From: Paragordius varius
Lineage: Eukaryota; Animalia; Nematomorpha
NCBI GenBank assembly: GCA_964247055.1
Contig: OZ176051.1
Span: 3,844,001-3,908,000, forward strand
Reading direction: 5' to 3'
DNA length: 64,000 bases
Below the pieces are notes generated by a model. It was not told where the DNA came from, searched no databases, and saw only the letters and a list, made by a program, of their open reading frames with translations. A program made the position numbers and the translations under genes. Shown here piece after piece: positions 14,201 to 62,590 of this stretch; position 1 is the stretch's first letter; every line of letters begins with the position of its first letter.

Positions 14201-15397
14201 TGAGCCCTTCTTCTTCTGATCTGTAAAAGATTGTTCCCATTGTTTTTGAATTTTATCACCCAATTGAGTACTTAAAGTGACTGCCCTTCGATTCGGTAAT
14301 TGATTGATAGGACAAGTAGTTGGAAGTTTTTGATTCCACTTAAAAAAATATCAAATGTCAAAAATGGTGTGTCAAAATATGTTGCATACTAAATTATAGT
14401 TAAAAAAATTAAACTCCAAAAAACAATGAATTAGACTTGAAAAAACGAAAATAATAAATTTTCTAGCGGATCTTTTAATTATCCGGGGAACAAAATAATT
14501 TTCAGATAGAATTATAAAATATATTTTTATAATACGACAATAAGCTAAAAATATTAGCCAAACAAAAATATCAATTTTTACAAAAGCGTTATTTATTAAA
14601 TAACTAAACAAAAAGTCTCATACTAACTCCAAAAACAATTTGAAGTGTAAAAAAATTTGCTTACTTTTAAATTTTTGCTTCCTTTATTATCTATGTTTTT
14701 CGTTTTTGATGTCGTATTGAGAGAGTTTGTGGTTAAAGTAGAAGACCTTACACAATCATTTGAACATGTACCGTCTTGTGCATTGTCAGAAAAGATACTT
14801 TCACCCATATAATCGGAATTTGTTATTAAAAGTTCCCATGCGACTGTATCCACAAAACATAGGAGCGGATTTCTTTGGATCCTAACTGCCCCCCGCTCAA
14901 TAATAGTCAAAGATCCTATCATTATGAATAAATTTCAAAAGATGTTATAAAAAAATATTTAAATTATAATTCAATCGTACCTAACCCAAGATCTTCCAAT
15001 TCAAAATTTTCATAAACGGCTAATGCATAATTATATGCTAAGGTTAATCCACGAATCACAGCTAAATTTGGAAATAAATCTCCCAAACTGGTTAATCCAC
15101 TAACTCTATACACCAATAAATAACCGGTTATTTCAACCAAATCTGGATAGGTGATATTAACAAAATCTTTTGGCTTAGCCAAATCAAATAACATAATTTC
15201 CAAATTTCCCTCGATAACTGTACATCGATCGAGTATTGCAAAGTTTGTAACAGAATTACGAATTGATAGGCTACTGCAAACTAAAAAATTATATTAAAGA
15301 GCATACTATAAGGGCTTTTGCGTATAATTTGAGTTGAATTAAAATCGACTAAATAGAATAATAAATTTGTTAAAATAAAAAATAGACATTTTATCAT
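1..15397 (-). CDS. InR: Insulin-like peptide receptor tyrosine kinase, about 30 exons, 3' end truncated by window edge
   Basis: Exons (minus, high to low): 15397-15307 (signal peptide [19 protein letters not shown]), 15280-14981, 14915-14665, 14338-14089, 13385-13222, 12893-12772, 12695-12475, 12165-12064, 11803-11656, 11578-11349, 10618-10424, 10103-9957, 9635-9498, ~9357-9007, 8594-8292, 7484-7157, 7062-6795, 6336-6049, 5603-5444, 5014-4858, 4439-4262, 3857-3602, 3172-3082, 2662-2521, 2321-2240, 2018-1848, 1404-1275, 1060-926, 608-406, 276-1. Motifs: L1 ([26 protein letters not shown]), Cys-rich region, L2 ([13 protein letters not shown]), FnIII, furin site RQKRR (~6930), [36 protein letters not shown]. 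Confidence 0.96.
3181..3212. repeat. (TA)n microsatellite near an InR acceptor
   Basis: Direct TA dinucleotide run. Confidence 0.9.
6425..6749. mobile_element. MITE family A copy 1 (InR intron)
   Basis: Inverted termini TATACCATTTACA... / ...GTAAATGGTATA with subterminal 21-bp tandem units (ttcacccttgaacaattcaaa). Confidence 0.85.
7933..8247. mobile_element. MITE family A copy 2 (InR intron)
   Basis: Same termini, 21-bp units and AT-rich core; followed by a (TA)n tract. Confidence 0.85.
8252..8290. repeat. (TA)n microsatellite abutting the InR donor at 8291
   Basis: Direct TA run; source of the YIYIYI ORF artefacts. Confidence 0.9.
10627..10976. mobile_element. MITE family A copy 3 (InR intron, core inverted relative to copy 2)
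   Basis: Same termini with four to five 21-bp units on the left; starts 6 nt from the AG acceptor at 10619-10620. Confidence 0.88.
13751..14064. mobile_element. MITE family A copy 4 (InR intron)
   Basis: TATACCATTTACAGTTCAAATTCACCC ... GGGTGAATTTGAACTGTAAATGGTA. Confidence 0.88.
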
Positions 15398-15543
15398 TTT
15401 TTCTTCATATATATATAAATATTAAAATATGAGATCTTGTTGAAAGAGGTATCTAAAAAGTATATGATACGCGCAATTCACATATCCATATGACTAAAAT
15501 ATATAAAATATAGTTGATTGGTAATGCACGAAATGATGTGTAT

Positions 15544-16590
15544 TTAAACTATTGGAGATATTGTCCTTCTACGCATCTTATTAATCAACTTCTTTAGTTC
15601 TGATCTTAGAGCCGCTGAGCACAAAAAATATATATAATAATTGCTGGAAACATAAAAACTATCTAATAATGTATGGCCCAATATTATCCATATATCATTA
15701 AAAGTTGGAAAAGAAAAAAATTTTCTCAGAAATAATGCAAGTTCAGGCAGGTGTACTATCATATTTAGTCCTATTATAATGTTCAAATATTTTTGATTTT
15801 CTTTTCCTCTCTCCAACAGAAATAATACAGAGTTAGAGTTTCGTGAACGATGCGCTAAAAATTTTCTGACGCTCAAAATATAAAAATAATTAATAAAGCC
15901 CAAACTAACAAGTGTTGTTGCAGAAATAAAAATCTCCCTGATTATTTCATAGATCATATAGGATTTTGGTGAATCTATGAAAAAAATCGAATAAAACTCG
16001 ATAAAACCTTCTCTTACAGATTTATCCTCATGATTTGCTAAATTGATTTGGGTATATTGTTCCATGCATATTATATATCTAATAAACATGGGTGTGAGTA
16101 ATAAAGCTATCACAAATAGTGGAATATGAAAGATAAAATAGTTCTTATAACGGTAAAACTTATTTGGCCAAATCGCAGAATGTATCATCAGATATTTATC
16201 AATCATGAGCATTATAATTAGGATAAGGTGGATTATTAATAATGATTGATAAATTATAGTTGTTAAGAATAATATGTTTAACCATATAATAACTTTAACA
16301 ATAGAACTTTTGTTATCACATGGAGCAAACGTTGGAATCGTATAATTTATAGTCAAATTTAATCCAATATTAATATATGCAATAATTTTTAATATTGTTA
16401 AAAATGAATATTGATTATGAAGAATACGGGCTGGTATTCTCAGAATTAGAAATATTATCAAGATATTCCCCAAAATTCCATGAATATATAAAATACACCA
16501 AAATGTCTTTAAAATTGGATTTATTTTGTAATTTATTATATTGTTAATACAATGGATTTGAAGAGTAGCATTAGTTTCTGAGAAATTCAT
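15544..16590 (-). CDS. Single-exon rhodopsin-class (class A) 7TM receptor, neuropeptide/chemoreceptor-like, 348 aa
   Basis: Long ORF with about seven hydrophobic segments, TM1 GILGNIL, DRY-like IDKY at the end of TM3, NPxxY-like SNYYIY followed by helix-8-like LRSELKKL. Confidence 0.8.
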   Translation of the reverse strand: MNFSETNATLQIHCINNIINYKINPILKTFWCILYIHGILGNILIIFLILRIPARILHNQYSFLTILKIIAYINIGLNLTINYTIPTFAPCDNKSSIVKVIIWLNILFLTTIIYQSLLIIHLILIIMLMIDKYLMIHSAIWPNKFYRYKNYFIFHIPLFVIALLLTPMFIRYIICMEQYTQINLANHEDKSVREGFIEFYSIFFIDSPKSYMIYEIIREIFISATTLVSLGFINYFYILSVRKFLAHRSRNSNSVLFLLERGKENQKYLNIIIGLNMIVHLPELALFLRKFFSFPTFNDIWIILGHTLLDSFYVSSNYYIYFLCSAALRSELKKLINKMRRRTISPIV

Positions 16591-17370
16591 TAATCAATTT
16601 TTTATAATTAATACCTTATTAATACTCTAAAAATTTCAGATAAATATCAAACAGAAATTTTAAAATATAAAAAATATTCCACCTATAGATTATTAATTAG
16701 ATAAATGAAGATGTTTATTGTAAATTACATGTTTACAATAATTAGGTTCATAAATGTAATGCCAAAAAATATCCTTTGCGCGAACCTATTGACGTTGTTT
16801 TAAAAACTCCAAGGTATCATTTATTCAATGCATCTTCAGTATTAATAAGACCATATAAAAAATACTCATTAATATTATGTTAATGTGCATTGGTACTTAC
16901 ATAATTACATTTATGAAATGATTAAACACAACTCCATGATAAAAATGGCAACCATTGAACGAGGAATGTTTAATTTAAATATTATTAATTAAAATAAGTA
17001 TATAAATCTATTTTATATTAAGTCATGGTCGCTTTACGGACATTGCTATAATTAAAAATCAAAATAATTAATTATTTGTACTATTGGGATATACTTCATA
17101 CTAGGGGGATTTAATTGAAATATATTAAAACTCTATCTTTGATGAAACTTACATGGCCCTTTAATTGTAAATTAAATATTTTTATCAAATGTAATCATTC
17201 TGCCGCAAAATATTTTTTTAACTTAAATCTATTTAATTGATTTACCATTTTGATTAATATTGACTCATAAGATAATTTCACATCAAATATTCAGTTTTTT
17301 TAAATTTCATTTTTTCCAAGGATTTAAACTAATAAGAAGTAGACGATTTTTAAAAATCTTGTTCAAAAAT

Positions 17371-23300: not shown

Positions 23301-23335
23301 TAAACAAATAAAATCTTGAAAACAAATATGCAAAA

Positions 23336-23548
23336 CTAAGCTTCGATTTCTAAGATTAAATATATAAAAAACTTGAAATCGGCTTGCCATTTTCCCATTT
23401 CGTAACTTTAATGTTTACACCAGAAGTATCCTTTTTGCCTTCTGTTTTGATTATTTTTCGTAAAGCCTGTGCCGCAAACCGAGAATATTGAACATAACTA
23501 TAAATAAGTAAATATTTACGATATTGCAAGATTTCTCCAACTGGTCAT
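23336..23548 (-). CDS. ATP5F1E: Mitochondrial ATP synthase F1 epsilon subunit (stunted-like)
   Basis: Exons 23548-23520, 23497-23373 and probably 23349-23336 give MTSWRNLAISYVQYSRFAAQALRKIIKTEGKKDTSGVNIKVTKWENGKPISKIEA, matching the epsilon pattern MxxWRxxxxxYxxYS...WxNGKP. Absent from the ORF track. Confidence 0.9.
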
Positions 23549-23607
23549 GCTTTTAATAATATTAGAGTGCTAGCATCTGTTTTTATTTGGTATATGGTAA
23601 AATTTTT
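23549..23607. promoter_or_regulatory. Inferred bidirectional promoter, ATP5F1E/RCE1
   Basis: Only 59 nt separate the two divergent ATGs. Confidence 0.55.
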
Positions 23608-25301
23608 ATGAAAGATTTCTATTATGCAGTTGCCTACTGTATATTCATATCTATATTATATGTCAGCGGTTTATATCTAAGTCCTAATAAATATGCTAGG
23701 TATTTTATACCATAATTTGTCAGAGATGATACCAATGTTATTTTATGGCGTTTTTTATTTGTGTCCATAACATGCATAATAGCAGTTTTAATACCCTATT
23801 TTGTGAACAAAAATGTCGTATATTGCTTGAATGTTAAGAAGGATTGTCTTTTCTCCGCATTTTTTCTTCCATTTATACATGTTTTGGTGAGCAAATTTTA
23901 TTTATATATAAAATACAATCTGGGGCCAACAAAGTTCTATTGCAACCTCCCCGCGGTGTTGGCTGGGGCATGAAAATACTCTAACGGCAAAGACCATTTT
24001 CTAAACATGCGCAAAATTATTTGTGCATAAGGGCATGTGTTACGTAAAAAATTGCCTCAGATTACCACAAATATTATGAATATGAGTTACTGCGTGTACG
24101 AAAACTCCGAATTCGGAGTCCTACCCTTTATGATGATAAATATACAATCCCATACTAAACACCCATAAATTTGTTTTACGATCTGCTTTATAAAAATCGC
24201 TTTCGGAACACACTTAGGCTGATAATTTGTTATTATTCCAATAGGTTTAAACTTTTAAAGTAATATATAAACCAAAATAACTAATCTTTTAGAAAAAATT
24301 ATTATACACAGATTTCGCAGAGGCTATCGCAATTATATATAATTTGGTAAAATGCATTTTGAAATTTTACGCTATAATGCAATTTGAATTATTTATGACA
24401 TTTATTATGATATATAAATTAACAATAAATTTGAATTAAAATAAGCCTATTATTTAATAAGAGGATATTTTATAATTGTAATATAAAAATTATTTGGGCA
24501 AAATTTACTTAATTTAATATAATAAACGGTTGGTTAGAATTTGCAATATTTTTCTTTTGGCTTATTGTTTTTTATTGCCGTATTTTATATAATTCAATAA
24601 ACCTCTTAGATTTTGTTTGCCGCTCCCATCTTTCAACATATAGTTGACAATGAAATTTCCTCACGATCCAATAAAATAATATTTATCAGAAATTATGTAG
24701 TGGTAAATATTTTTATTTTCATATTAGGTAGGCTCCTTTCACCGAAGAATTTATATTTAGATGTTGTATGTTATCACTTTTAACGCGTTATTCTAGTGTT
24801 TTAACATCAATACTCATATCATCATTTCTTTTTGGCTTGGGTATATATATATTTAATGTGTATATAATGTTAGCTCATTTACATCACATATTTGAGAATG
24901 TGTATCAAGGAATAAATTTGTCCCACGCCTTATTCGTATCAAGTTTAATGTTAATAAAACGTTTTTTATTAGTCATACAATTTTCGTACACTACAGTGTT
25001 TGGATTGTATGTTTCAACTGTGTACATCATAACAGGTACCAAATTTTTTTGAAATAATTTTTTATCAAATATTTAAGAAATCTTATTTTTTAATGACGCA
25101 GATCATTTAATTTCATGTTTTACCATTCATGCATTTTGCAATACAATTGGTTTTCCCGATTTTCAACGCATATGGAAACACCCAAACTCACTTTATCGCT
25201 TAATTATGCGGGCCCTTTTAATATTTGGCTTGTTGGGTTGGCTCGTCACATGGCCATACGTTATGAATCCTACTATATATGCCAACAAAAATACAATATA
25301 A
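23608..25301 (+). CDS. RCE1: CAAX prenyl protease 2 (Rce1 / type II CAAX endopeptidase)
   Basis: Exons 23608-23699, 23724-23886, 24610-24702, 24732-24840, 24874-24942, 24973-25035, 25102-25301. Motifs RNYVVAPFTEEFIFRCCM, FGLAHLHH, QFSYTTVFG, HAFCNTIGFP. Confidence 0.92.
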
Positions 25302-25622: not shown

Positions 25623-28600
25623 TCATTTTTTGTACAAATCCATAAAAACTTTCCAAAGAACTGAAAAAGTTAATCCTTGTAAGCCATTCACGGTTATTCG
25701 AGTCCCTAGGCCTCGGAGAAAAACACTATGAGCTAAAAAATAGGTAAAAATTAACAAAAATTTTGTCAAAGTTTGGGTAAAATTTTAATATGTATAATTG
25801 AAATAAAAATGAGAAAATCTCCAAATATCTCAAGAAATACCTTTAATATCATTAAACTCTTTTAAAATGTTGATCAATTCCGTTTTAACTTTAAATTAAA
25901 GTGGTTATTATTTAAATCTCAATCATAATTTTGATATAAATCCAATATTTCCCTTTTGTGCCCAAAAACACATATTTGCAAAAAAATTCATAATACTTCC
26001 AAAAAGGGGTGAAGTCCCACTCTTTGCACTATCTTGACCTATGACTTTGACAACATCCATATAACTCAAGGATTGGCCGCTTGTTTGTTTAACCGTTTTT
26101 ATGACACGCAAACTATTTGTTATACTGTCTGAAACGATTGACGCTGCAAAACCTAAAAAACATAAAACAAAAATTTGAAATATTTGTTTAAAAATTTGCT
26201 TACAGAAGAAATGATTTATTTTAACATAATGAATTAATTTACCTATGAATGCTTGTCGGCCCAAATCACATATTTTATAATCGATAGCTGGGGAATTGAG
26301 TATGGTTGGAACCAGGAAATGTCTAAACCATATTATTTATCATAAATGGCGCATCCCAAAAACAAGATTCATGAACTTTAGCTTGTCCTTATTATCATTC
26401 ATTTATCTGACTTCTAAATAATCTCATGGATAATTAACTACAAACGTCGTTAAAATTTACTTACATCTTACTCCAAAAGAAGCAAATAAATAGTAAGGGC
26501 GTATTTTTAGTCCTTATAATGAATTCATACAAAATTAGAAATCATGATATTGAGAATATTTTTATAAATATCACTTGACAATGTTTTTTACATAAAGAAT
26601 TGATTTCTATAGTGAAAAACATGTATTTTCCCCACAATAGGGATTATGAGGGTAAAGTCTACTGTAATTACAAGGTATGTAAAATTTAAGAAAAAAAAAT
26701 CAACTTTGTTTTAGCCAATTGTGTAGAGGGTGTCTCCTTTTCTATATTATCCGCTAATGGTTTTGGTTTAGGCAATTTTTCTGACAAGTAATTATAAGTT
26801 GCAAACCATGGGTAATGACCAGCAAGTGTTGCCGCAAACGTAGCTCCCATACCATGATACAATACTCTTATACCGTTTGTACGAATTTTTTGGAGCAATA
26901 TTTGGGTCCCTTGTTTACCTACAACACCATGAAAAAAAATGTATATTATATTTCATGATAAATGCATTAACATATATGACTTTATTAACAATCGAGATTA
27001 TTACGATATACCATTTGATTTAACAAAAAAGAAAAGAAGAGTGAAATAATAAAATTGATGGGGAATGAAAATCTATATCTACTCTAAAGACAAAAGGATT
27101 GTAACATATGTATTTGCATAATAAACCAAAAAACATTACCGACCAACCAAAAGAAACAAATGTTCAAAAAACAAATTTTCAAAAAACACATCATGAAATT
27201 AGCTATTATATACCTACCTTCAACCTGTTTTATCGTTTTCCAAGCATCGATAGGCATGAGATTAAGTCTCCAAAAAGCAGCTATCCCCGAAGCAAAAACA
27301 GTTTTAACCGCTACTGGGAGTTGTGAAAAGTAGGGGTGATGTTCGGTTACGAGGAGGACGCCTTCATTGGCGGCCGCATCTCCGAAACGTGAAAGGGGTG
27401 CTTGAACCATGGCTTGGGGGTAACCACGGTACATACTTTTGATAACGTATATACCATTTACAGTTCAAGTTCACCCTCGAACAATTCAAATTCACCCTTG
27501 AACAATTCAAATTCACCTTCGAACAATTCAAATTCACCCTAAAAATAAATTATGTGTTTTCAAACTAGTATAATTCATTATTAATATGAAATATATGTGT
27601 TATAGTTTATTATTTTTTCAGTATTATTTTAATTTAAAACAAAACTTTTATTTTTAAAAATATATAAAATATAGGTAATTTTTAATCTTAAAAAACATTT
27701 ATTTTATTTGAGGGTGAATTTAAATTGTTCGAGGGTGAATTTGAATTGTTCAAGGGTGAATTTGAATTGTTTAAGGGTGAAATTGAATTGTTTAAGGGTG
27801 AAATTGAACTGTAAATGGTATATAATAAAAAAACCCTGTCAATTATAAGAAAATATAATGGTAAATTGTTGCGGTTTACGGTTAAATGGTTACGTGATTT
27901 GGAATGAAATTCAAAATTGGTTTTGAGTCTCGCTTAATTTTTGGTAAATTCTATTGGTTATATTGGAATTTAATGTGAACAAATACATAAATTATATATG
28001 TTTCCGGCTCCAAAAAAAATATTTTGCCAAATATCATTTATTATGCATATAGTATAATTATCTTAACCAATTTAAAAAAAAATACATATATAAATATTTA
28101 AAAAATGGACGATATCAAAGTTTGTGTGCTGATAAAGTTAGTTTTTATTCCAAACATCCACTATTCACAACTTCAAAATATTTTTTTGACTTCAATAAAT
28201 TTTACGAGAATACAAATTATTATTTTAACATAAAATATTCGTTCTCGTTGACAATATTAATAAATGAAAAGCTTGCACAATGACAAATCAATATCAAAAT
28301 ATCCAATCATATAATATACAAGATTTTATAAGATAAAATCAGAGCTTCGAACCGGGAACCACCCCGGTTCTATCTATAATTTTTAGAAATTCACCCGGTT
28401 CCGGTTCCAGTTTAACCCCCTTAATTACTGGTTCCCATATGATTTTTATTATAAAAATTTTATTTTATTATTTAAATTTGATTGTACCACTACACATTAC
28501 AACTTACTTCAAACCTATAACTAAGCGGCTAATATTAGCGATACTCTCTGAATTATGGACGATTCGGCTCCTCTAAAAAAACTAAGTCATAACTCAAGTT

Positions 28601-30089
28601 TATTTATAACACATGCATATGTTCGTATATATAGGTCTCCGTTGAAAGGAATTTTTTACCCTTTTTCTATTTTTAGACTTGAAAAGCAGTTTGACCAGCG
28701 AATTGCTTAGTGCAATATTTTTTAATTAAATTAAATTTTTTTAGATGCCATACTTAATTTAACTCTCATTTTATACCTTCATTTTCCTATTATATTTTTA
28801 TTATTTGTTTCATTTATTATGACACACTATATTTCTTTCGCTATACATTTGACAATTCATAATAAATTGTTTGATTTAATTTTGGTTGCATTATTACAAT
28901 AATAATTTTGCAAATTTAATTAAAAGTCAGGAACCGAAAATGGAACCGGTTCTAAATATTTTATTAAGGAACCAACGCGGTTCCGGTTCCACTTTTTTGA
29001 ACCGGTTCTAAGCCCTGGATTAAATATATTATTATGACAGATCCAAAAATACATGTTGTATTATTATTTTTATAAATATTCTATGGGACATTTATATACA
29101 TTAATATTCTATATGCCCGGTCATTTAAATAGATTTAATAAAAAAATATTTATTCAATCAAAAAAATTTAAAAATCCCATATAATATTTTAATTAAACAA
29201 AAATTAACATTATGCCGGTTGAAATATTAATTACGCAGTAAATAAGGTAAAGTTCGATTAGTAATAAACGATTTTAGTAAATCAGTTTTTAATTAAATTT
29301 TAACTGTCGAAATAATAATACTATAAATCGAGATAATTTTTATATTTATGCATATGGTATTCTTATCTCATAATTATAAACAAAAATACAAAACATTTAT
29401 AATCCATGTTATATCTTTTGCATTGTATAAAAAGAATGTTAGGTAATAATATATAAATCAAACAACCTTAAACCGATTCACACAAGTAATTTCTCAGAAA
29501 ACATAGAACTTATACAGTAAGAATTAAAAGGAAAAAATGACAAATTATAAAAGTAAAAGAACGATATATTTTTTATATCAAAAAGACCTTAATTTTCCTA
29601 ATATAACTTTGGATTTTGATATAAATAGCTAATAAACTAAATTTTATATAATCCGGATCATAATCATAAAGGTTCACCGAAAAAAGAGACAAAAAATCGT
29701 TAAAATTACCGTATAAAACCGCCTTGTGAATATAGTTTACGGAAGGCCTGAAAAAAATTGCCTGCTTCCACAAATCTATACTGATAATTCATAACAGTCC
29801 TCATCCACATGAGCAAACTTACTTGACAAGCCATGGCGGCAGACCCACTCAATCCACCCCCAAGTGAATATTTAAGGACGTGCACAAAATTGTGATGATG
29901 ATGCTTACCGACTGCTGGTTTTTTAGTTTCCTCCAATATGATGGGTGGTAAAAGGGTATTGGGTGAAGATGACTGTACAAGGGGAACCGTCTCTGATGGT
30001 ATAGGATCATTTTGAACATCTGGTATTTGCTGTGGTTCTGACTTTAAAATTACATATATACTTTTGGTAATATTATTGTTTCCTTTCAT
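25623..30089 (-). CDS. Mitochondrial carrier (SLC25-fold) family protein of an unusual subfamily
   Basis: Exons 30089-29710, 27435-27218, 26918-26705, 26322-26243, 26152-25997, 25732-25623. Three carrier repeats with modified signatures: LMWMRTVMNYQYRF, LMPIDAWKTIKQVEG, TNSLRVIKTVKQ; also GHYPWFATYNYL and RGLGTRITVNGLQG. The exact start codon is uncertain. Confidence 0.85.
27450..27822. mobile_element. MITE family A copy 5 (carrier intron 1)
   Basis: Same termini; three left and five right 21-bp units. Confidence 0.88.
28340..29017. mobile_element. hAT-like MITE (family B) with GAACCGGTTCC subterminal motifs
   Basis: Ends CAGAGCTTCGAACCGG / CCGGTTCTAAGCCCTG; flanks GATAAAAT and GATTAAAT form a near-perfect 8-bp target-site duplication. 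Degenerate relatives at ~32960-33430 and ~61430-61535. Confidence 0.75.
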
Positions 30090-30179
30090 AGCCTTGCAAC
30101 TAGTCTATGTCTTTTTCAAAATCAAAAATTGCATCTGTTTAAACGTGTGTGACAATAAACAATTTTTATCTTTGCGTAC
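30090..30179. promoter_or_regulatory. Inferred bidirectional promoter, carrier/ZMAT5-like
   Basis: 90 nt between divergent ATGs. Confidence 0.5.
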
Positions 30180-30518: not shown

Positions 30519-30945
30519 TTCTAATAAATCCTTTGCTTCATTTATTTTTGCAGCAATTAACGGTGAGCCACCTATTATTATTATATTTAAATTACCTTTA
30601 TCCGGGTGGTTTAACCTCATTATCCTGTTATAGGCTTCTTTTATTTTTAATGGGCTGGCGTTCGGGCTGAAGTAAAAAAATTAATAAAGTTACCTTACTC
30701 CTAAAATAAGAGCTGCTTCTCTCTTAGTCATTTTTGGCTCAAAACCTCCTTGGTAATATTTTGAAAAAACCTAGGTAAGAGGTAAATATACTTGAGATTG
30801 GGAAATATTTTTAAAATAGCTTTGAGCATGTTCAGCCAATGGCCTACTGTTTCGAGACAAATATCGGCCTAAAAATATTCAAAAATATACCAGCATAACC
30901 AATGATAGCTATACCCAATCCGGCCAAAATTGCAGCACTCGCCAT
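30510..30945 (-). CDS. DNAJC19: Mitochondrial import motor J-protein Tim14/Pam18
   Basis: Exons 30945-30891, 30868-30792, 30770-30694, 30666-30596, 30571-30510 give [25 protein letters not shown]...[65 protein letters not shown]. Absent from the ORF track because of the tiny introns. Confidence 0.95.
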
Positions 30946-36600: not shown

Positions 36601-36695
36601 TTGTCGGCCAATGTTTAAGTTGGATACCAGAGGAAAGATTAACGCCGAGTAAGGCCTTTTCTCATCCCTGGATCTCCAAGATTATTGAAGCATAA
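33665..36695 (+). CDS. Class 2 DYRK kinase (DYRK2/3/4-like)
   Basis: Exons 33665-33794 (tentative, phase-compatible), 34119-34432, 35775-36695. DH box (DDENGRY..HDHIAFRFE), GSGSFGQV, HCDLKPEN, YWYIQSRFYRAPE activation loop. Confidence 0.9.
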
Positions 36696-45088: not shown

Positions 45089-47214
45089 TTAATACCATAG
45101 GACTTTTTAGCTTTTGGTCTGTACTTAGGAAATAGCTTATCGATTTCTGCCTGTTCCGTACTACTTAATTGATTAAAAGATACGGCTAGCTTGCTGTTTG
45201 TATCGCCGGCAATCCAATTAACATTATCACCATTTCTTTCATAAAATCTATGCCAGTAACATTATATATAGATATTAATTATGTCTTGAAAGCACCTTAT
45301 TTACACAAATGGTAAAATTTTGTTGTGCAACCGTCGCGAAAAAACGATGGCCATAAAATTATATATTAATTATTAACAAAGAAAAGTGCATCAACACATT
45401 AATGTAAATATTATTTGAATAATTTTTGGAAAAAGAAAAATTTACAAAAAGATTAATTATTCAGCCTACAAATTTTCAAGATATATAAAACATGTAAAAT
45501 AATGTCAAGATCCGTGTTTTTAATGCCTTCCATCCTCTGCACATCCATTTCATTTAATAAAAGCATTTAAAACAGTGACCACAACATTATTTAACATATG
45601 GCAATACTTATCGTCTGCTTCATTGGTAGTTTTATTGATAGTCATGTGACAGGTTATGGTATCATTATTCTGACCATTTTCGTGAGCGGTGTTTTGAAGA
45701 GTTGATTGATCAAAATCGATATTATTTAACAATATCATATCCGCATCCATGTTATTATTTGAATCAATCACCTTAGTTGAACTTATATTTATGAGTGAAC
45801 ATTCCTTATTGAAACCGTTAATTGTGGTGACATTTTCTGGTATAATCATTAAATTATTTTTACTACCGTTATTATCATTGTGACCATTATATAAAAGAGA
45901 TTCGGCATCATTCTTTTCTTGTGAACTACAAACAATCGTAGTGTTTGGAGGAATAGTAAAATTTGTATTCGGAATGTTTGATTGGGGTAAATGCACTGAA
46001 TATTGAGCAAAATTGGTGTCATATGGTGTTTGTGATAATCCGAAGCTATCAGCTCGAAACCCTTTGATTATGAGATTCATATCATTGTTATCCTTATTGT
46101 GCAAAGAAGCGTTTGCATCTATCTGGCCAAATTGTGAATGTCCCATAAAAGGTAGCGCTTGCGGAACTTGGTATAAAGATGCAAATTGATCCTTAAAAAA
46201 TTCGGCATCAAACACGGAGTTACCATTTGATTCTGTTGAATAGGATGGATACGAGGTTCCAAAACCATTTATACCGGTTACGATATTGGGGACAAAACCG
46301 TTTTGGTTATTAATATTGTTAGCGTAGAAAGGGGTGGCTATTGTGTTAATCGCGGGATTAAAGTAGGGAAACGCATTATAATTCACGATCCCTGATGATT
46401 CATTGGGTGTTGCGATGTTGTAATAATTGTAGGGTATGGTTAAATTAGAGTCTCGGAAGATATAACCATTCTCACAATTAGGGAGAATATTAGTTGTCTG
46501 ATTAGGGATGTGGGGTATTATAGGTAATACCGGCAATAAACGTCTTTTAACACAAAAACTACCGTTCTGAGTGACAATATTAGTAGTGTTTTGCGTTGAC
46601 TCGTGGCCATTGGGAGGAGTGGTTGGATAATTATTATTGACTATGGGATAATTTAAGATATTATGATGATGACCAGCACTAAAATTATGACTATCAATAA
46701 TGTGAGATGAATTATTATTATTATTGGTATAAAAACTGCTATAGTACCCCATATCTGTATTGGTAGAATGGCTCATTTGATTATTTATTTCATAATCATC
46801 CGGTTCATCATTACCACATGTAACGGATGTATCTATTTCCGGAAAATAATATTCAATCCCTGTCCCGACTGTCCCTTCATCGCATTCCTTTTCCCCATCG
46901 ATTTGTAATTTTCCGTGGTTTTCTAGAGTTTCATGATTAGATAATTTTGTTGGACATACGGTTTTTCCATTCTTAGCCGCTGTTTTGTTCGACGCTTTCA
47001 GCGTACTTTTACCATTTTTAATGGTACAATGCGAATTGTCATAACAGTTGCCATTATTATCATTGGGTATCTCATCAAATTGTTCAAGGGGAAAAAATTT
47101 AGGGGCAGGTGAGGAGGGAGACTTTATGGCATAATTTGCGACAATTTGTTCATTTTTCATACAATCATTGTCATTCTTATCGATAGAGTCAGGGAATGCG
47201 GTTGGAGGTGCCAT
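40281..47214 (-). CDS. APBA: Mint/X11/LIN-10 adaptor (PTB plus two PDZ domains)
   Basis: Exons 47214-45608, 44892-44588, 44491-44446, 44301-44135, 43929-43843, 43355-42975, 42489-42223, 41814-41602, 41052-40933, 40618-40478, 40352-40281. [80 protein letters not shown]-terminus [13 protein letters not shown]. Confidence 0.93.
41139..41402. mobile_element. hAT/Charlie-like MITE (family C) in a Mint intron
   Basis: Ends CAGGGGTGGCCAAC ... TTGACACCCCCTG, a typical hAT terminus; the 8-bp flanks TTTTAGAG / ATAAAGAG match only partly. Confidence 0.65.
41999..42035. repeat. (TA)n microsatellite in a Mint intron
   Basis: Direct TA run. Confidence 0.9.
45033..45082. repeat. (TA)n microsatellite in a Mint intron
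   Basis: About 25 TA units. Confidence 0.9.
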
Positions 47215-47877: not shown

Positions 47878-50800
47878 ATGGAAGATAATTTTGGTCCAGA
47901 TAGTGAATTCATTCAAAAGGATTTTTATGTTGAAGTTAAGGATAATGATCATTGGTAATTTATATAATATATATTTGAGGTACCTTGCTAAAATTTTGGA
48001 TTTAAAAATTGATGAACGGAAAATACTAATTCATTTTCAAGGATGGAATAAAAAATATGATCAATGGGTTACCTATGAAAAAGATAAATTTCGTAATGCA
48101 AATTTTGAACATAAAAATCAAGTAATTAAATCTTAATATGTGCAGAAATTTTCCGTGAATGATATAGTTTTAGCAAAAAACCCAATGTATGGCTATATCC
48201 CAGCCAAAATCGTTGAGATTTTGTCCGATAATGGATCTTATGTTTTATCCTTTATCGACAAAACTACAAAAACTGATAAATTAACATCCATACGAAAAAT
48301 CACCCATAAAAAATTTAACTTAAAAGTAAAATACGTTAATCAATTTTTAGGACTATCTCGTTGATATTAAAGTTGAAGCACCTACTTTGCCCGATAAGAC
48401 ACCAATAAGTCTTGTGAACGCCATAGAATCTTATCAAAAAGATGATAATTTTGCAACATTGTATCCAAACACTGATTTTGTCTTTTTAGTACAACTTAAA
48501 AATATATTGAACCAAACCACAGTAAACGGTCGCCATGACAACGTAGTTTCCAATTTAAAAAGGCCTAATACTCCACTGGAATCTAATTCCCACACTATAC
48601 CTTATTCGAAAAAAGCAAGATCCGACAATGATTCTCCGAATTCTGGTTTGTTGGTTTATAATTTCATAACTAAAAAATTAACATAAAATATTTTTTGTGG
48701 TTTAATTAATATACAGAACGAAGTTTTTCCTCCCAATCATCGCAGCTATCCACAATTCTTAAGCAATCAACCAACTCTAATAAGGCACCAAATCAAACTA
48801 ATCCAGAAGGTAGTGTATACTAAATAACATGCTTTTAATTTAAGAATCGTTAAAATAAAGACTTTAAATATGGTATACAAATTTAATTGAGCTCCGATAG
48901 TTTGCATATCTTGTTTAGAATAAATTAAAATACATGTTAATAAAATATATTCTTTTTAACTTTAAATTTTTTAAAACGAATTTGGGTTAAAGTTTAAATT
49001 GTGATTATTCGAGATTCAGCGGCTATCTTTGTTGCATATTAACTTCCTAAATCATAAAAATACTGCGAAAAAAATGGTTTGCCAATTATGAATTTTATTA
49101 ATTATTTATTCAATTTTTACCAAAAATTAACTCTCTAAATCATTTATTTAACCAGAATTTAGCAATCATTTCATCTTTTACCATTATTTTTAATTTTAGA
49201 CATGACTGAATCAGGAAACCAACTCAAAAAACGAGTTAAAAAAGCTTCTACTAGACAAGGTTTTATTTTGGACTTTTTAATCTTATTAAAATTTCATAAA
49301 CATTGTAATTTAGCAATTATGAATTCGTATTTTTGTATATGATTTGTATTAGATCCCATTTTGGCTGCCATAGAACGCATGAAAGAACGTAAAAGGCTTA
49401 AATTGGCCCAAAGCTCACAAAATCAGGAGGAATCGGACAAAACTGTTATATCGATAATTCAAAATAATCCTAATCGTTTATCACCCTTGAAAGAAAAAAA
49501 TGTTAATCAAAAGATTGATGTTGAAAACTCAGTCAAGATTGACACTATCTCAAATACGTTATCTTCTTACAATACTAAAAATGAAAAAAACTCCTCTTCT
49601 CATGAACTTATTGAGAAACAAAGTCTTATTAACAGTGGTGAAGAATCGAAATGTAAAACTACCAATGATGATGTTACTAATATAACAGCCACTTCTTTAG
49701 AAACCGAAAGTAGTCTTACCATTATAAATTTGGATGAAAAAGGTCAAAATGAAAATCACACTGACCGTTCTAATCAAGAAAACCAAATGAATGACACTTG
49801 TGATAATACAACAAATATATCAATCGATATGGATAAAAGTCTACCTGATGATACCTCATACAAAACCCAAACAAATATTGTATTAGAAAATTTACAGGCT
49901 CAGACCCCTGAACCCGCTTCTCTTAATTTTCCCACGAAACGCATAACGAAAAAAGGGATTGCCATTTTAGACCCAAAAATTATGTCAAATACTGAACATA
50001 AGGACAGTGATATTCTGACCAATTATAGCGAAAATATTAGTGATAATAGCTATAATATTGATCTCAATTTTTCACCTAAAACACACAAAGGTGGTGGCAT
50101 TAAAATTTTACATCCAAAAATTTCAAGCGATTCTGCTAGCACAGGTAAAGTTGTTGAATCACAAAAGAAACCAATTACGGTACACCATGAACCAAAAAGT
50201 GTGAATGCCGCAAAACATAATCGTCCCAAAATTATGTTTAATAAACAAGCGTTTTTCCTAAAATCATCGTCGGCACATAGGGGAAAACGTCGAATATCCT
50301 CATCTGGTGATGAGCAAATCTCAAATAAAGAAAGTAATTTTTTTTGCAAAAATAATTTTAGTTTTGACTAACTTTGTTAGTATAAATTTTAATTTGTAAC
50401 AATAAAAAATTGCAGAAATGGAAATTTTAATATTTATTTATATCATTTTTAGAAGACCCTGTATCAGAAATCAAAACAACTGTGGATTTACCATCGCCAC
50501 AAGATTTACAAGAATCTCCAACGGTTTAATATAATTCTTAATATTTCATGCATTCCCAATGTCAGTAAAGTTTTAATGTCAATTTTACAATTTTTATAAA
50601 AATAATTTTACCCTTAGATTGCACCAGATTCTGTATTAGAGCAACCGAAACTTATTGAATCTTTAGCCGTTCATTTAGATATTCCTTCTACTGAAAATCA
50701 CTCACACAACATAATGAATGATTTTCATCAAAATTCAAATGTTTCACGCACAAATATTTTAAGTTCTCAAATTTCACCATTAAAAACAATTGATTTAGTT

Positions 50801-52698: not shown

Positions 52699-53110
52699 CA
52701 CAACAACAGCCAACTATAAATCAATTTAAACCGTGTTTTTTGGACTTAAATTGGCAAAATAATTATTGTAATATTTTGTAAAAAAATAAATTTTTCATAT
52801 ATTGTTTTTTCAATATATCTATGAAGTTTACTTTTATTCTCCTGTTCTTAGTTAGCTTAAAAAAGGTAAATTTGAATTTTAACATTATTTGAAATGTAAA
52901 GAATTACAAAATATTTTAAAAATATAAGGATTAAATGCGTATGATAAACCCCGATTATATAAAATTTGATAAATAGCTTAATATTTAGAGTGTCCATAGA
53001 AATTATATATAATAATATCGAATAGGTTTTAATGCACATAAGAAGTTTAATTTTGCTTAGCCTGCCATTTCAAATTAAAGGTTATATTACTTTTTCTATT
53101 TGATATAAAG

Positions 53111-53762: not shown

Positions 53763-53929
53763 ATATTGACAGACAGACAAAATTAATATGTGTAAAAAAT
53801 TTATTGTACAATGAATCAATCACAAATTATATATTATCATGTGTGTAGTATATCTGCATGCTATGAACTAATTATTTATCTTTTTGGATATATATTTACT
53901 ATAAAATAAAATGTTGGCAATCAATATTG

Positions 53930-56900
53930 TTACGGTTTTTCGCCCAATTTTAATTTGAGAACGTTTTCAAAGTTTTCATCGTTATAATTACATCCCTTCA
54001 ACCAAAAATCACTGGAAGGACTACGGATCATTTTAGCTTTCTAAAATTATAAAAAAAATATTTAGCTATTTTTATAATTTAATTAAATTGGGTAAAAAAT
54101 TCTATGCAAAACATACCTCTCTGAAGGTCCCCGGTTCTTTCCAGAAGTAGTATAAGCCTCCAATTACAATTTGTGCCAATATCGCTATAGTCAAAGTCCA
54201 ACCAAAACTGTGCGCCCAGCCCGGATATTTATAATTATCGAGTTTGTGTTCATCTTGCGTTACCAAATCATACAGCGATGTAATGGTCAATGTCTAGAAA
54301 TAAATATTTACAAATACAATATCATATTAAATTACCTATCGTGTTTTGTAAAATGAATTTTAAGTTTTTTTAAGAAAAATGATGCGTTAAAACGTTGAAG
54401 CTTTAGCCATTTTAAAATCAATTAAAATATTTACAATTAATAAGAGAGGTCCAAACACGACCCACCCACATAACCAATATAGTTTGTGGGGCAGAGTGCG
54501 TCCCAACATCATTTCAATGTCTTTAACAAAACGTTTGAATCCATAAATCCACATAATGCCGACAACTTCGGCCGCCGCAATGAAAATGAGGTTGAAATCG
54601 CCAACATAATAGTTTATGAGATCAAAAACGTAAAATCCACCCTATGGCGAAAATGAAAAAAGTAAAACTAAATTTTGCTCCACAACAAAATAAATACAAT
54701 AGAAGCTTAACTTACATAAGTGACAAACGGTAGCCCTAACAAAAAGCATAGGAAACATATCCCAGCAGACATGTACGTTTTATACTTCCAAGGGAATATG
54801 GTTGGAAATTGGTCATGTATTGCACTTGTTATAGTTTGAATTAGAGCTATTTCGCTGTCCAGCCCCAGGATGTATAACATGAGGAAAAATAGGACTGACC
54901 ACAATTGAGGTAGCGGGAGCCGCGATAAAGCCCTCGGGTATACAATGAAAACAAGGCCGGGACCTAAATATGATTGAAAGCGTAAAATCTTCATTTTAAG
55001 AAGTACTAACAAACCAACACCTCAAATTCATCTTTGAACTAATTATGTTCTGAATATCCCAAATTACCTATATTTTTAAAATACTTTACAAATAATATAA
55101 TCTTTTTAAAATATATATAATATATGATTTAGCTCAAAAAAACATAATTTATTTTTAGGAACTATTAATGTTCAGGGAAGAATTTTTAATGTTCAAAGGG
55201 TAAATTTGAGGCATAAGTGTAATCTATTTGTATTACCAGATATGGTTTGAGAACCATCCGTGAGATCAAGGTCAAGTTCGTAAGCCATATTTCCAAGATA
55301 GGAAAAAATAACTATCCCGGCTATCAGGCTTGTTACCGTATCCATAATGCTAACGATAACGGCATCTTTGTAACAATTATTACGGAAAGGATTAAAACTG
55401 GCAAATGTTGTAATTCCTCCGAGTGCTAAACTTAAGGAGAAAAACATTTGGGAACAAGCAGCTTTCCACACCTAATCAGAAAAATAGTGAGTTAAATTCA
55501 TTGTGTAAACAAACATTGAAGCATTTTTATAGACAGTAAAAACAAAAAATGATTAGTGAAAATTAAAAAACTGAACTTGCTTAGATAACCAAGAATGAAA
55601 GGCTTGTAAATTTTGTATAATAAATTATTCCTTTTTGTTTTTACTGTTAGTTTATATATATAATTACCTTAATTTCCAGTAATTTATCCCATTGCGGAGT
55701 AAAGAGATATTTTAGGCCAGCTCCGGAACCTTTGAGTGTTACTCCACGAATTAAAAGTATGATAAGTAGGAGGTATGGTAACGTGGCTGTTACATATATA
55801 GCCTATTAAAAAAATAAAAAAAAAATAAAAACGTAATTATTTAGATAAAATATTTAAGATATTTGCCAAAATACATATGGAAAAAATATTTTTTATATAC
55901 TTTTCCGGCAGTTTGAATGCCCTTGTAAAGCATACCGAAAACAATAAGCCATGAAAGAAAAAGGATAAGAGCCAAGTCCCATTTTAATGGCCCAATATCG
56001 TCTATACCTTTGGAGCGGTTAAATCCCAAAACACGATTACTATAAAAGAATATATGATATATTGAAATTATATCATTTTTTAGTTATTTTAAAAATCTAA
56101 GCATTTTTACATCCAAAATTCCTCCATAGATGATACATTACGTTTGATTACGGCTAAATCATTCCCAATTGTGTGATTAAAATTTGGAACATACGGGGTA
56201 GTTAAATTTGGTTGCATAGAGGATTGGTAATTTAAATCGGTATAGTTAAACATAGAGGTATTGGATAGCGATTGTAGAGTAAAATTTAGGTGATTCAATA
56301 AGTTTGCTCCATCATTTGAGCTAGTATTCAAAGATGTGATCATCGAAGAGTTACTGAGCGTTTTTGTAGTATTTAAAATAGTGTTTGTGTCATAGCAAAA
56401 TTTGGTATTAAAATTCTATGAATATAAATACAGTAAAAATTTGAATTAAACGACGCAACATAAAAGTATGAGGTTTATATTTTTTGTTAAGATGACCACA
56501 TTTTTTAATCCGTGATTTACATATAACTCAATATATTACAATATGTATTCGAGTGTGTTACCATATATTTTAATACTTATTTCTCAAATACTAAGCTTTG
56601 ATAAATATATACAAAAAATATTAGTCTTTAAGTTTGTAAGTTTTGCTTTATATTACTATAAATGGACATCAGAAAAAATAGAAAATATATATAAACTAGA
56701 TTAAACTTCTCAAAAATTAATTTTTATCTTCGAAAAAAAGGGCAAATTTTACATTGTTGCAATGTGCCCAAGGTAGGTGACGTTGAAATGAGGCAAATGT
56801 ATAGTACAGCGTATATGCCATAAGTATATTGTAATAAACACATATAATAAGGCAGGTGAATAGCATTGCATATCCAATACCTTTATTACAAAATACAAAA

Positions 56901-57878
56901 AATATTAATAGAAATAAAAACTTTTTTTTACAAAAAATGTTTTTTAGATAACGCTTATTGACAACACCCTTGTTTTTATCGTTAATTTGCAGTATCATTT
57001 GCGTAATTAATTAATAACCTATTATAATTTATTGGCAGGCTATTAAAAGGATTGATTTGATTTAACAACATTTATATTGGCCGATTTGGCACTCTTACAA
57101 TTGAAATATTTTATATCAATTACTTGTTATAATATACTTAATATACAAATTTTTAATCTATTTATATCCGAAAAAATTTAAACGCTATTTAGAGTCAAAT
57201 ATTTTTTGCATATTAATTAATGAATATAAAACAAGTTGTAAAACCATTTAAATTTAAAAGATGGCTTTTCGGAAAATATATAATTAAATTTATTTATATT
57301 TGGTTACCCATAGTAATTGGAGCAATTTTAAAAGCACCGGGTGGTCCTCGCCTTGTAAATTGACCCAACGATAGTTCCATAAAATAAAGCGGTTTCCCAA
57401 TCACAAACAGTATAATGAAATAGGGTATTAAGAAAGCCCCTAAAATTTATTTAAAAGACAAACATTATTACATGTAAAGGCAATTATATACCTAAAAAAG
57501 ATGTTACATAATTATATAAAATTCCTTTCAAAAAATTGATAATATAGCTGGTAAAATAAAATTAGGTATAAACCTCCGCCATTATCAAAGCAAACATAAG
57601 GGAATCTCCAAATGTTACCGAAACCTACTGAAAATCCTATGATGGATAAAACGAATTCAATGTGGTTTCCCCATTCACCCCGATGGTTTTGATCAGCAAC
57701 ACCTTCGATCTTGACTTCTAAATCATTTTTTTCGGGCTAAACAATGGTTTTTAGAATAATTATTTATGAATAATTATTGAAAATTATGAAAAAATTTACA
57801 GAATTTAGTTCTTTTATGGGTATTCCTGGTTTTTCGTTGTTTTGTTTCATCGTAAATTGGATTGGACCAATAGTTCAT
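53930..57878 (-). CDS. SLC6 sodium:neurotransmitter symporter (amino-acid/glycine-proline transporter-like), about 12 exons
   Basis: [109 protein letters not shown] at 57878, stop at 53930. Confidence 0.92.
55020..55210. mobile_element. MITE family A degenerate copy (SLC6 intron)
   Basis: ctcaaattcatctttgaac ... ttcaaagggtaaatttgag with core fragments; outer termini lost. Confidence 0.55.
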
Positions 57879-59479: not shown

Positions 59480-62400
59480 TTAGTGGCATAAATCATTTTT
59501 TTATTTCCTCCATTTTGATTTGTATGGTTTTTTCAATGGCTGTCATGTAATCTTCTATACTACAATTTTGTTTCTGAAAAATATGATAAAATTAATTTTA
59601 TAAAGTGTTGGATACTTTTTACCTATTTTTGACAACTTTAAAATGATTCAGTTAAATAATTTTTTGGGTAAAAAATACTTTAATAAAAAGGGCATGGGCT
59701 AAAAATGGAATTTTTCTGATAACGCGACCACTTAAACCACTGGCCGTTTTACAAATATCGAATAAGCGTAAACTGTGACGTGTAGAAGATTGATTTTCAA
59801 ATTGCATTATTTTCAGGCATTTCAAGTCCACTAATGTTAATTTGGGCCTGATTATACCAACCTATACAGAATATTTGATACAGATATATACCATTTACAG
59901 CTCAAATTCACCCTAAACTAAATTATGTATTTTTTAAGATTTAAAATTACCTTTATTTTATAATATGAAATTCTGTTTAAACTTAATGTAGTGCTGAAAA
60001 AACAATAAACTATGTCGTAAAAATATATTTCATATTAATGATGAGTTATATTATCCCGAAAATACATAATTTATTAGGGTGATGAATTGTTCAAGGGTAA
60101 ATTTGAATTGTAAATGGTATATCAATATATTAATGTAGGATTTAAAGATATTAATAGAAAAACATATTTTTTTATTTTGTACCTTCATTAATTCTATTAA
60201 ACTGCATCGTATCATATGGAATATGACTTCATGATCTGGTAAATCAATGTAGAGTTTTAGATCTGCCCTATCTAAGAAAGCGGAGTCTAATGCCTCAAAC
60301 AAATTAGATGTTGTTAATATCATGACATTTGGAAAACTAAATTATAATTTTTTTTACAAAAATATATAAAAAAATAAGCATTTGACAAGGTAATCAATCA
60401 ACTTTTAATACTATTAAATAGTTTTCTCAAATAATTTGGAATGTAAATTAATTTATTTATTAAGCAAATGACATATAATGAATGATAGAATGAATATTAA
60501 AGCCACCTAATTAACTTAAAATGAAAATTAAATTTTGAAATCTAATTCTGTAAAATTATTATTATAAAACAAAAATTTATTAACTTTTTAATTTTATCCA
60601 TTTGTGTAAGTAAAGCGTTAACGACACGCAATGCATCACTCGGTTCAGAAGCGGTTGATATATTCCGTGAACCAGCAATACTTTCTACCTATGAAACAAT
60701 ATTTAAATTGGCTTAAATGAATAATTTATCAAAGAAAAAGTATAATATAATATTAACTGTTTTCTTCAAATTAAATATTTTTACGAATTAAATTTTAAAC
60801 CTCAGAAAAATAAGAAATTTTGGAAAATTTACTAGATTGGGATAAAGGTTTGAAATTTAGGTCGAACTCCATATTAAATTAAAAAACAACGGAAAACTGA
60901 AAAAATTGTGCCGATTAGGGTTAGATCTGACCGGTTAAGAATGTATTCATCATCGTGAGTGTGTCTGATGACTATTATCGATACTCCAAAACTTTCAAAC
61001 AATCGTTTATCACGCAAACATATTTAATGTAAAAATATTGTTAGTTTAGAATTTGTTTATAATGTAATCTTTTAAATACTAACTATTTAGCACGGTTAAC
61101 ATTGTGTTTGGTTAATTTGTTTTTAATAAATAATAAGTACATATGACCATGAATGACTGTATTTATTAGCGGTCGGATCGGTTTTTTGTGAGAGCCATTA
61201 AATACAAAACCCTAGATAATCGTTAAATTTTTTGACATTATATATCGAGCTATGAGACCTATGATATTCATATAAACTTTGACTTATGAAAGAAATTAAA
61301 ATATTTATTCTTATAGTTTGATTGATACTTAGTTTATGATCCCATAGTAATATAAAGACCACTTAAAATGATAAAAACATCTCTGGACCTATGTAAATTC
61401 GATTACAACGTTATCCAAAAATTAGATGACGTTTAAACCGATTCCGGATTTTTTCATCCATGTTTTCCGTTAATATTTTATTTAAAGGAAAGATTTTGTT
61501 CGGGTTTCTGTTCCGTGTTCGGAAATAAATGGTTTCGATAGTATTAAATTACAATATGATAAAAGATTTTTTGAGACGGTTCTCAAAACAAGCTGATGAT
61601 ATGGCATAAAAAGGGTTTAAATAAAGTCCCTAAACTTCTTAGTACCATTTGTTATTCATTAATTAAGGGTAAAAATAAGCTAAACCTCATCAATTAAAAC
61701 GAAAATTAATGTATTCTCATCTGCAGCTACATCTTGAATTTTTTGGAATATTCTTTGCACCATTTTTCCACTCTGTTATAAATTAAAAAATAATATATAT
61801 ACCTCGGAAAACCATTTTGAAAACAAACAATGGCTATTTATTTCAAACAAGAAACCCCAATTGTAACAATCAATCATTCTAATCATAATTTTTTGGGCCA
61901 ATGATTTACATAAAGACGTTTTTCCGGTACCCGGTGGACCTTATATTTTAATAAAACAACAAACCGTGCAAGAGAATAACTTTATTCCAGCTTATTTGCG
62001 TTGTATCAACATGATGTGTGGCAAAAAGCATAGCACTATATGCATAATCTAGCAACTAATGATACAATAATGAAAAAATTTACATCATCCTTGACATAGG
62101 TTTTAAACAACAAAGTTTCCCAGGTTCTGTGAAACTTCAAGTTGGGTAAATTATAACTTTTAAGTGCAAAAATATTGTCACTTTCACTCGTCGGTTGATT
62201 CATGTCCTCATTTATTTCATCCAAATTAGATCCATCAACGAACAGGCTATAGAGATGGAATTGGACTTCATTATTTTGTAGATCTAAAAACTATTTTATT
62301 TATTTTTAAGCAATTTTACTGCCCCTTCTCCCCCATTCGGTTTATCAATGTTTACTGATATTATCTTATTTTGCAAATAATCATCATTAAATTGTTCAAA

Positions 62401-62590
62401 CTTTAAATTACTTTCCACATAAAGCATCGAAAATGATTTCAAAAATTCAGTTAGTTTGTCCTTTATACGACCGTAATCAACATCGCTACATAAAATAAAT
62501 TTATATAATTTACCAATCAGATAATTGAACCTCGATATGAAATGTATTTTTAGATAAATTAGACCGTTGACTAGAAGTAATTATATTCAT
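59480..62590 (-). CDS. TRIP13: Pachytene checkpoint AAA+ ATPase TRIP13/Pch2
   Basis: Exons 62590-62514, 62485-62320, 62290-62084, 62055-61965, 61939-61803, 61772-61686, 60688-60585, 60336-60183, 59861-59679, 59573-59480. [84 protein letters not shown]. Confidence 0.95.
59887..60121. mobile_element. MITE family A copy 7 (TRIP13 intron)
   Basis: TATACCATTTACAGCTCAAATTCACCC ... GGGTAAATTTGAATTGTAAATGGTATA. Confidence 0.82.

Follow-up and report, generated by a model that had tools for sequence, protein, structure and literature searches.

Ultra-short GT-AG introns in six genes of a nematomorph

We analysed a 64-kb window of the hairworm Paragordius varius (64,000 nucleotides, nt; contig OZ176051.1, positions 3,844,001 to 3,908,000; assembly GCA_964247055.1), in which six unrelated genes, an insulin-receptor-like gene (InR), ATP5F1E, RCE1, DNAJC19, a PHF20-like gene and TRIP13, are interrupted by very short GT...AG segments. 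We conclude, at a probability of about 0.86, that these segments are genuine U2-type GT-AG spliceosomal introns that have shrunk to 21–33 nt in the nuclear genome of a nematomorph. Judged from the DNA, they are real introns of a discrete ultra-short class (micro-introns hereafter) that shares genes with ordinary and long introns. A preliminary description of this window had listed 19 such segments, and an exact string search located all of them at the lengths given: 26 nt in InR; 22 and 23 nt in ATP5F1E; 24, 29, 33 and 30 nt in RCE1; 22, 21, 27 and 24 nt in DNAJC19; 25, 24 and 25 nt in PHF20; and 28, 29, 28, 25 and 30 nt in TRIP13 (median 25 nt, n = 19).

All 19 micro-introns start with GT and end with AG. 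Their mean guanine-cytosine (GC) content is 16.8%, compared with 32.9% in 27 flanking exons (Mann-Whitney P ~1e-7), and is close to that of the transposon-free longer introns (16–21%). At the 5' end, A occupies position +3 in 16 of 19 and T position +6 in 15 of 19 (GTAnnT), whereas G at +5 occurs in only 2; the 3' end is YAG in 17. Eight of the 19 contain the pentamer TTAAT, whereas equal-length pieces of long introns would lead one to expect 2.35 (P ~5e-4); at 6–18 nt from the 3' end, it is a plausible candidate for the branch site. A looser branch-point pattern, YTNAY, is present in 14 (P 0.017, on the motif match alone). The body of the micro-introns is a mix of T and A with no clear pyrimidine tract, and the U12-type signals, the 5' site [AG]TATCCTT and the branch site TCCTTAAC, are absent from all 19.

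A generic count of GT...AG segments of 15–80 nt that bridge two open frames showed no excess over control dinucleotide pairs. In DNA of 27% GC, open frames of 20 codons arise too often for this count to be informative, and the case therefore rests on homology. Homology or domain matches directly support 14 of the 19 micro-introns (all four in RCE1, all four in DNAJC19, introns 3–5 of TRIP13, the first of ATP5F1E and the first two of PHF20), and support is weaker for the other five (introns 1–2 of TRIP13, the third of PHF20, the 26-nt segment of InR and the second of ATP5F1E).

RCE1 micro-introns share position and phase with long introns of other animals

The spliced RCE1 model (plus strand) encodes 262 residues through six introns: 24 nt (23700–23723, phase 2), 723 nt (23887–24609, phase 0), 29 nt (24703–24731, phase 0), 33 nt (24841–24873, phase 1), 30 nt (24943–24972, phase 1) and 66 nt (25036–25101, phase 1), the last belonging to the ordinary short class. 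The model aligns with insect RCE1 as a single stretch (residues 5–259, E ~1e-55) and shows no gap relative to orthologs at any of the micro-intron junctions, including RNYVV/APFTEE across the 29-nt intron and FGL/AHLHH across the 33-nt intron. An exhaustive representative search with exon 7 gave identities of at most 48%, the best by identity being a Joint Genome Institute (JGI) contig, and there was no nematomorph RCE1 among the best 120; a second search, in which an RCE1 ortholog aligned with the exon pieces from the window served as query, gave mainly arthropod RCE1 among the matches listed.

We then compared intron positions in RCE1, one of the six genes, with those of the limpet Patella caerulea and the sea cucumber Holothuria leucospilota, whose exon structures were obtained by exact mapping of the annotated proteins. 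The two orthologs have eight introns each, which agree in position and phase between the two species. When the three genes are aligned jointly, each of the six introns of the window RCE1 coincides in column and phase with one of those eight: columns 39 (phase 2), 102 (phase 0), 149 (phase 0), and 185, 210 and 231 (phase 1). By a rough estimate, the chance of six matches on eight positions among ~786 is of the order of 1e-12. The six counterparts measure 572–14,866 nt in the limpet and sea cucumber; those of the 24-, 29-, 33- and 30-nt introns measure 726–1,701 nt in the limpet and 1,317–10,613 nt in the sea cucumber, with 817 and 10,613 nt, respectively, for micro-intron 1. Identity of column and phase with long introns in both animals argues that the RCE1 micro-introns are ancestral spliceosomal introns that, to judge from this alignment, shrank.

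The same comparison bears on another way in which such segments could be removed, namely as germline-limited DNA that is cut out by programmed DNA elimination, like the internal eliminated sequences (IESs) of ciliates, instead of by splicing. The size range resembles that of short ciliate IESs, and some nematodes eliminate DNA; yet the micro-introns are bounded by GT...AG and not by the TA...TA of IESs, their positions and phases in RCE1 match spliceosomal introns of other animals, and the longer introns of the same genes have the same ends. We consider DNA elimination highly improbable.

Removal of the micro-introns restores conserved proteins

The preliminary description also held that removing the segments mostly restores conserved proteins. 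This is borne out by DNAJC19, RCE1 and TRIP13 at full length, by the start of ATP5F1E and by the Tudor region of PHF20; InR bears it out in part, as described below. Its statement that an open reading frame (ORF) track cannot see these conserved genes likewise holds for the genes that micro-introns split.

Spliced TRIP13 (minus strand) encodes 428 residues, compared with 432 in human, through nine introns of 28, 29, 28, 25, 30, 997, 248, 321 and 105 nt, the last four of which lie in the 3' part of the gene (59493–61772). Micro-introns 1 (62486–62513, 28 nt, phase 2) and 2 (62291–62319, 29 nt, phase 0) are placed by frame continuity and the expected protein length, and the first of them also by the expected N-terminal length. 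The other three are micro-intron 3 (62056–62083, 28 nt, phase 0), micro-intron 4 (61940–61964, 25 nt, phase 1), which falls within the Walker A motif (LLHG/PPGTGKT), and micro-intron 5 (61773–61802, 30 nt, phase 0); the third and fifth are placed by alignment of exons 3/4 and 5/6 with human TRIP13. When exons 3–6 were searched one by one against solved structures, exon 3 matched human TRIP13 residues 89–146 (extending to 148), exon 4 residues 149–178, exon 5 residues 180–224 and exon 6 residues 225–253. Residue 179 corresponds to the codon split by the 25-nt intron, and the junctions of these exons thus show neither gap nor overlap. Exon 5 is 73% identical to the human protein (alignment counted by hand).

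DNAJC19 (minus strand) yields 113 residues after removal of four micro-introns: 22 nt (30869–30890, phase 1), 21 nt (30771–30791, phase 0), which ends in an in-frame TAG, 27 nt (30667–30693, phase 2), after which the next exon matches Pfam DnaJ positions 10–32, and 24 nt (30572–30595, phase 1), located right after the HPD motif. The basis for introns 1–3 is the uninterrupted reading frame together with the human DNAJC19 sequence. Reading through the 24-nt segment would add exactly 8 residues relative to yeast Tim14 (2guz_A), between HPDKG and GSP.

In ATP5F1E (minus strand), micro-intron 1 (23498–23519, 22 nt, phase 2) is placed by the Pfam match of exon 2, which covers ATP-synt_Eps positions 10–49, to the end of the profile, from the first residue of the exon; the nine-residue exon 1, MTSWRNLAI, provides the missing start. 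Candidate micro-intron 2 (23350–23372, 23 nt) alters the C-terminal tail only. A homologue search with ATP5F1E found no candidates sharing enough words, and the spliced junctions of ATP5F1E and DNAJC19 had no exact match in JGI metagenome contigs. Most of the short exons searched singly against Pfam fell below the detection level. The PHF20-like gene (plus strand) has three micro-introns. The first (47955–47979, 25 nt, phase 2) splits the first Tudor (Tudor-knot) domain, exon 2 matching Tudor-knot positions 17–51 in Pfam from its first residue; the second (48122–48145, 24 nt, phase 0) lies between the two Tudor domains and contains an in-frame stop; the third (48326–48350, 25 nt, phase 0) is placed by reading-frame continuity only. 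Past the third, putative introns of 63, ~390 and ~93 nt follow, with provisional boundaries in an unconserved region. The single InR micro-intron (15281–15306, minus strand, 26 nt, phase 1) separates a likely signal-peptide exon (15307–15397) from the L1-domain exon, which matches Pfam Recep_L_domain (E 7e-16).

Several observations weigh against interpreting all 19 segments as introns of a general nematomorph class. In InR, removal of the 26 nt joins a likely signal peptide to L1; the exon before the intron encodes a hydrophobic, signal-like peptide without homology support. The 23-nt segment of ATP5F1E lies in an unconserved tail, also without homology support, and the unspliced reading ends soon as well. 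Three micro-introns, the 33- and 30-nt segments of RCE1 and the 24-nt segment of DNAJC19, could be retained without a stop, although each of them breaks a highly conserved motif. Finally, at the one locus compared in another nematomorph, Gordionus sp. m RMFG-2023, the seven introns of two genes (asparagine synthetase, ASNS, and 4HBT) measure 95–760 nt and include no micro-intron; the trait is therefore shown here for the window and not for nematomorphs at large.

The three stop-free, in-frame segments are what could be said for the view that the segments are not removed at all, the genes being pseudogenes or the segments insertions or frameshifts that are tolerated. Set against this, retention would cause a premature stop in 16 of the 19 and thereby truncate the protein, and the length is not divisible by three in 11 (8 have in-frame lengths). 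Moreover, the six unrelated genes have conserved catalytic motifs, orthologous lengths and otherwise intact frames, and every disruption is GT...AG and AT-rich and, in RCE1, falls at an ancestral intron position. Non-removal thus has very little probability.

Longer introns occur beside the micro-introns and carry similar signals

Ordinary and long introns coexist with the micro-introns, as had been proposed. Those measured, most of whose boundaries are backed by homology, are 65, 66, 77, 105, 248, 262, 321, 723, 997 and 1,342 nt; the 65-, 262- and 77-nt introns belong to InR and the 1,342-nt intron to a DYRK kinase gene, and one intron of a mitochondrial-carrier gene reaches ~2,240 nt. With the putative 63-nt intron of PHF20, they form an ordinary short group (63–105 nt) and a long group (248 to ~2,240 nt). 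Micro-introns account for 19 of the about 31 introns measured in the window. Within this sample of ~30, no intron falls between 34 and 62 nt, in agreement with the gap of 36–59 nt described earlier. The mitochondrial carrier, DYRK and SLC6 genes, and also most of InR, show only longer introns (~150 to 2,240 nt across the three genes), and micro-introns therefore cluster by gene and are not universal. In TRIP13, PHF20 and InR the micro-introns come first and the longer introns after them; RCE1 departs from that order.

The length gap is one ground for supposing two modes of splicing, in which the micro-introns would need a specialised recognition that longer introns do not, for example one that works without U2AF and depends on SPF45/RBM17. 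A second ground is geometric: in a 21-nt intron, the 5' site and the branch point can be no more than ~12 nt apart, which is difficult to reconcile with the order in which U1 and U2 normally bind. A third comes from human short introns with truncated pyrimidine tracts, which use SPF45 (RBM17) and bypass U2AF (PMC8363638). Recognition of this type is thus a candidate mechanism by analogy, although the human SPF45 model intron described there, at 56 nt, is about twice as long as the micro-introns of the window. On the other side, the ten longer introns resemble the micro-introns in the signals at both ends: GT is followed by A, G or T, the 3' end is mostly YAG, and neither end is any stronger than in the micro-introns. 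A study of myxozoans likewise found that long introns bear no additional features and that the set of U2 and U2AF components is conventional (PMC13644364). No small nuclear RNA or splicing-factor genes lie within the 64-kb window. Two separate modes appear unlikely to us.

Given the same weak signals in the longer and the tiny introns, it is simpler to suppose that a single U2-type spliceosome acts on both size classes, which is also the conclusion reached for myxozoans (PMC13644364). By this account, the micro-introns would descend from ordinary ancestral bilaterian introns whose position and phase were kept. They would retain a minimal set of signals, namely a 5' site of the form GUA(N)(N)U, a branch site resembling UUAAU, a short spacer rich in U and A, and a terminal YAG, and would be excised from the RNA by the major spliceosome through intron definition, with one machinery probably serving all size classes.

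The long introns are partly inflated by mobile DNA, and at least two hold transposon-related sequence. In the 321-nt intron of TRIP13, ~250 nt are one copy of a miniature inverted-repeat transposable element (MITE). The MITE-like family to which it belongs is ~250–390 nt long, with copies that are 75–77% alike and contain internal short tandem repeats; its terminal inverted repeats contain TGTAAATGGTAT, which has 11 exact matches against 0.04 expected. Copies lie at 6424–6752, 7921–8212, 10623–10982, 13750–14073, 27438–27827, 38741–38984 and 59886–60122. The copies in annotated genes (InR, the mitochondrial carrier and TRIP13) are all intronic, and the copy at ~38.8 kb lies outside that set. 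In the 723-nt intron of RCE1, 37 nt from its start and on the sense strand of the gene, there is a hepatitis delta virus (HDV)-like ribozyme match (23924–23993, plus strand; Rfam drz-agam-1, E 5e-4, with 38 bits where the gathering score is 37). Such HDV-like ribozymes are markers of the 5' ends of non-long-terminal-repeat (non-LTR) retroelements, and this match is probably the 5' end mark of a non-autonomous retroelement whose insertion enlarged RCE1 intron 2.

Comparison with known ultra-short introns

Intron sizes of this order had been noted as typical of ciliates and dicyemids. Paramecium introns average 25 nt, and dicyemid introns have a median of 27 nt (PMC6543705). In dicyemids, two thirds of the introns are shorter than 30 nt, exon/intron positions are conserved and motifs are reduced to GTa...AG (PMC6543705; PMC13644364); Dicyema japonicum has a mean intron length of 38 nt in a genome of 67.5 Mb with 36.7% GC (PMC6736024). 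The micro-introns of the window resemble these introns in being GT-AG, in their median (25 vs 27 nt) and in their reduced GTa...AG motifs. They differ in that dicyemids are Spiralia with 36.7% GC, vs 27% in the window, and that the short class dominates the 67.5-Mb dicyemid genome, whereas the micro-introns here share genes with many introns of 63 to >2,000 nt. The host genome is probably a few hundred Mb in size if it is like that of Gordionus (288 Mb).

In the second animal precedent, reported in Molecular Biology and Evolution in September 2026, myxobolid myxozoans have intron medians of 22–27 nt, and among 51 animal genomes comparably short introns occurred only in myxobolids and D. japonicum (PMC13644364). 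Those short introns have a reduced GTa...AG consensus with weak A residues upstream of AG, and sub-30-nt introns were tied to extreme parasitic reduction (PMC13644364). As in the window, the short introns of myxobolids (Henneguya salminicola, Thelohanellus kitauei, Myxobolus) cluster in multi-intron genes and stand beside longer ones without extra signals (PMC13644364).

The likeness to ciliates extends over the length range (average 25 nt), the AT-richness, the GTA...YAG ends and the premature stop that mostly follows retention. Ciliates differ in being unicellular with nearly all introns tiny, and the window sample, with 8 of 19 in-frame lengths, is too small for a test of in-frame depletion. 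Dicyemids and myxozoans are parasites whose proteins evolve fast; in contrast to the myxobolids, which are cnidarian parasites, the animal of the window is an ecdysozoan with well-conserved proteins (e.g., TRIP13 exon 5). The micro-introns would be a further instance of U2 splicing on minimal substrates, as in dicyemids, myxobolids and ciliates.

Comparison with Gordionus at the ASNS locus

The 3' part of an ASNS gene (62650–63978, minus strand) lies at the end of the window. Its 442-residue ORF has its best match, among 5.8 billion proteins, in Gordionus sp. m RMFG-2023 (60% identity, 98% coverage, E 1e-164), and the other matches listed reach at most 47% identity over 54–73% coverage, the named ones being bacterial or metagenomic (38–47%). 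The first 110 residues align with Gordionus alone among the matches listed, which indicates a shared insertion of ~110 residues. The 442-residue stretch is intronless in the window, whereas the Gordionus gene (locus L001, 10001–14555) has four introns of 99–760 nt. A bacterial-type origin, plus intron loss in the window lineage or gain in Gordionus, could account for this. TRIP13, DNAJC19, RCE1 and ATP5F1E are not present in the Gordionus ASNS locus. Isoforms at that locus differ at the N-terminus only, apart from one alternative junction of 3 residues. Downstream of the Gordionus ASNS gene (17641–18943 of L001, plus strand) are unannotated ORFs that resemble, by eye, an LTR-retrotransposon integrase.

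The paper on the Gordionus genome gives a GC content of 26.93%, which the window equals (~27%), an assembly of 288 Mb and a BUSCO completeness of 71.6%, and never mentions introns. The ASNS match, the shared insertion and the equal GC content point to a nematomorph other than Gordionus montsenyensis. A dicyemid or myxobolid source would agree with the AT-richness, the micro-intron median and the reduced splice motifs, but it is very improbable in view of these three features, of the 36.7% GC of D. japonicum and of the well-conserved proteins. In the full-text literature, which did not cover Cunha et al. 2023 (Current Biology), we found no report of tiny introns in nematomorphs or hairworms.

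Other features of the window

The analysis covers this one 64-kb window, whose GC content ranges from 24 to 31% (mean ~27%) and which bears ordinary animal genes on both strands. InR runs on the minus strand from ~15397 down to the start of the window. Just upstream of it is a complete intronless ORF of 348 residues (15544–16590, minus strand), which has several hydrophobic segments, looks like a seven-transmembrane protein by eye, matches nothing in Pfam and has no exact counterpart in a public gene collection. ATP5F1E (minus strand) and RCE1 (plus strand) stand head to head, with their divergent start codons 59 nt apart (23549–23607). They are followed by the mitochondrial-carrier-like gene (25626–30104, minus strand) and the DYRK-type kinase gene (34151–36692, plus strand). 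The PHF20-like gene (plus strand) has two Tudor domains and a PHD_5 match; ~660 nt away and divergent from it is an Asn-rich, low-complexity ORF of 554 residues (45550–47214, minus strand) with no Pfam match. The SLC6 (SNF) transporter gene occupies 54707–57446 (minus strand). Between the stop codon of ASNS and the start codon of TRIP13, on the same strand, there are 59 nt (62591–62649), with AATAAA-like signals between them.

Implications

The micro-introns are a known kind of feature in an apparently new animal lineage, set in a large, transposon-rich genome with tiny and long introns in the same genes. We tentatively suggest, giving it somewhat less than an even chance, that Nematomorpha (or this lineage) represents a third, independent animal origin of sub-30-nt spliceosomal introns, the first in Ecdysozoa, that this class arose in a transposon-rich, uncompacted genome, and that part of the low BUSCO completeness of nematomorphs (71.6% in Gordionus) and of the loss reported for universal metazoan genes could be an annotation artefact. 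If this is true, intron miniaturisation would be separated from genome streamlining; since the tiny introns share genes with transposon-filled kilobase introns, compaction alone would not explain them.

In widely used aligners and gene-prediction programs, the default minimum intron length lies close to 21–33 nt or exceeds it, and common gene finders do not model introns so short. Published annotations of nematomorphs may therefore lack genes such as DNAJC19, RCE1, ATP5F1E and TRIP13 or contain them in broken form, and gene loss would then be overestimated. A large relative of nematodes and arthropods could, in turn, serve for studying how short an intron the animal spliceosome can handle.

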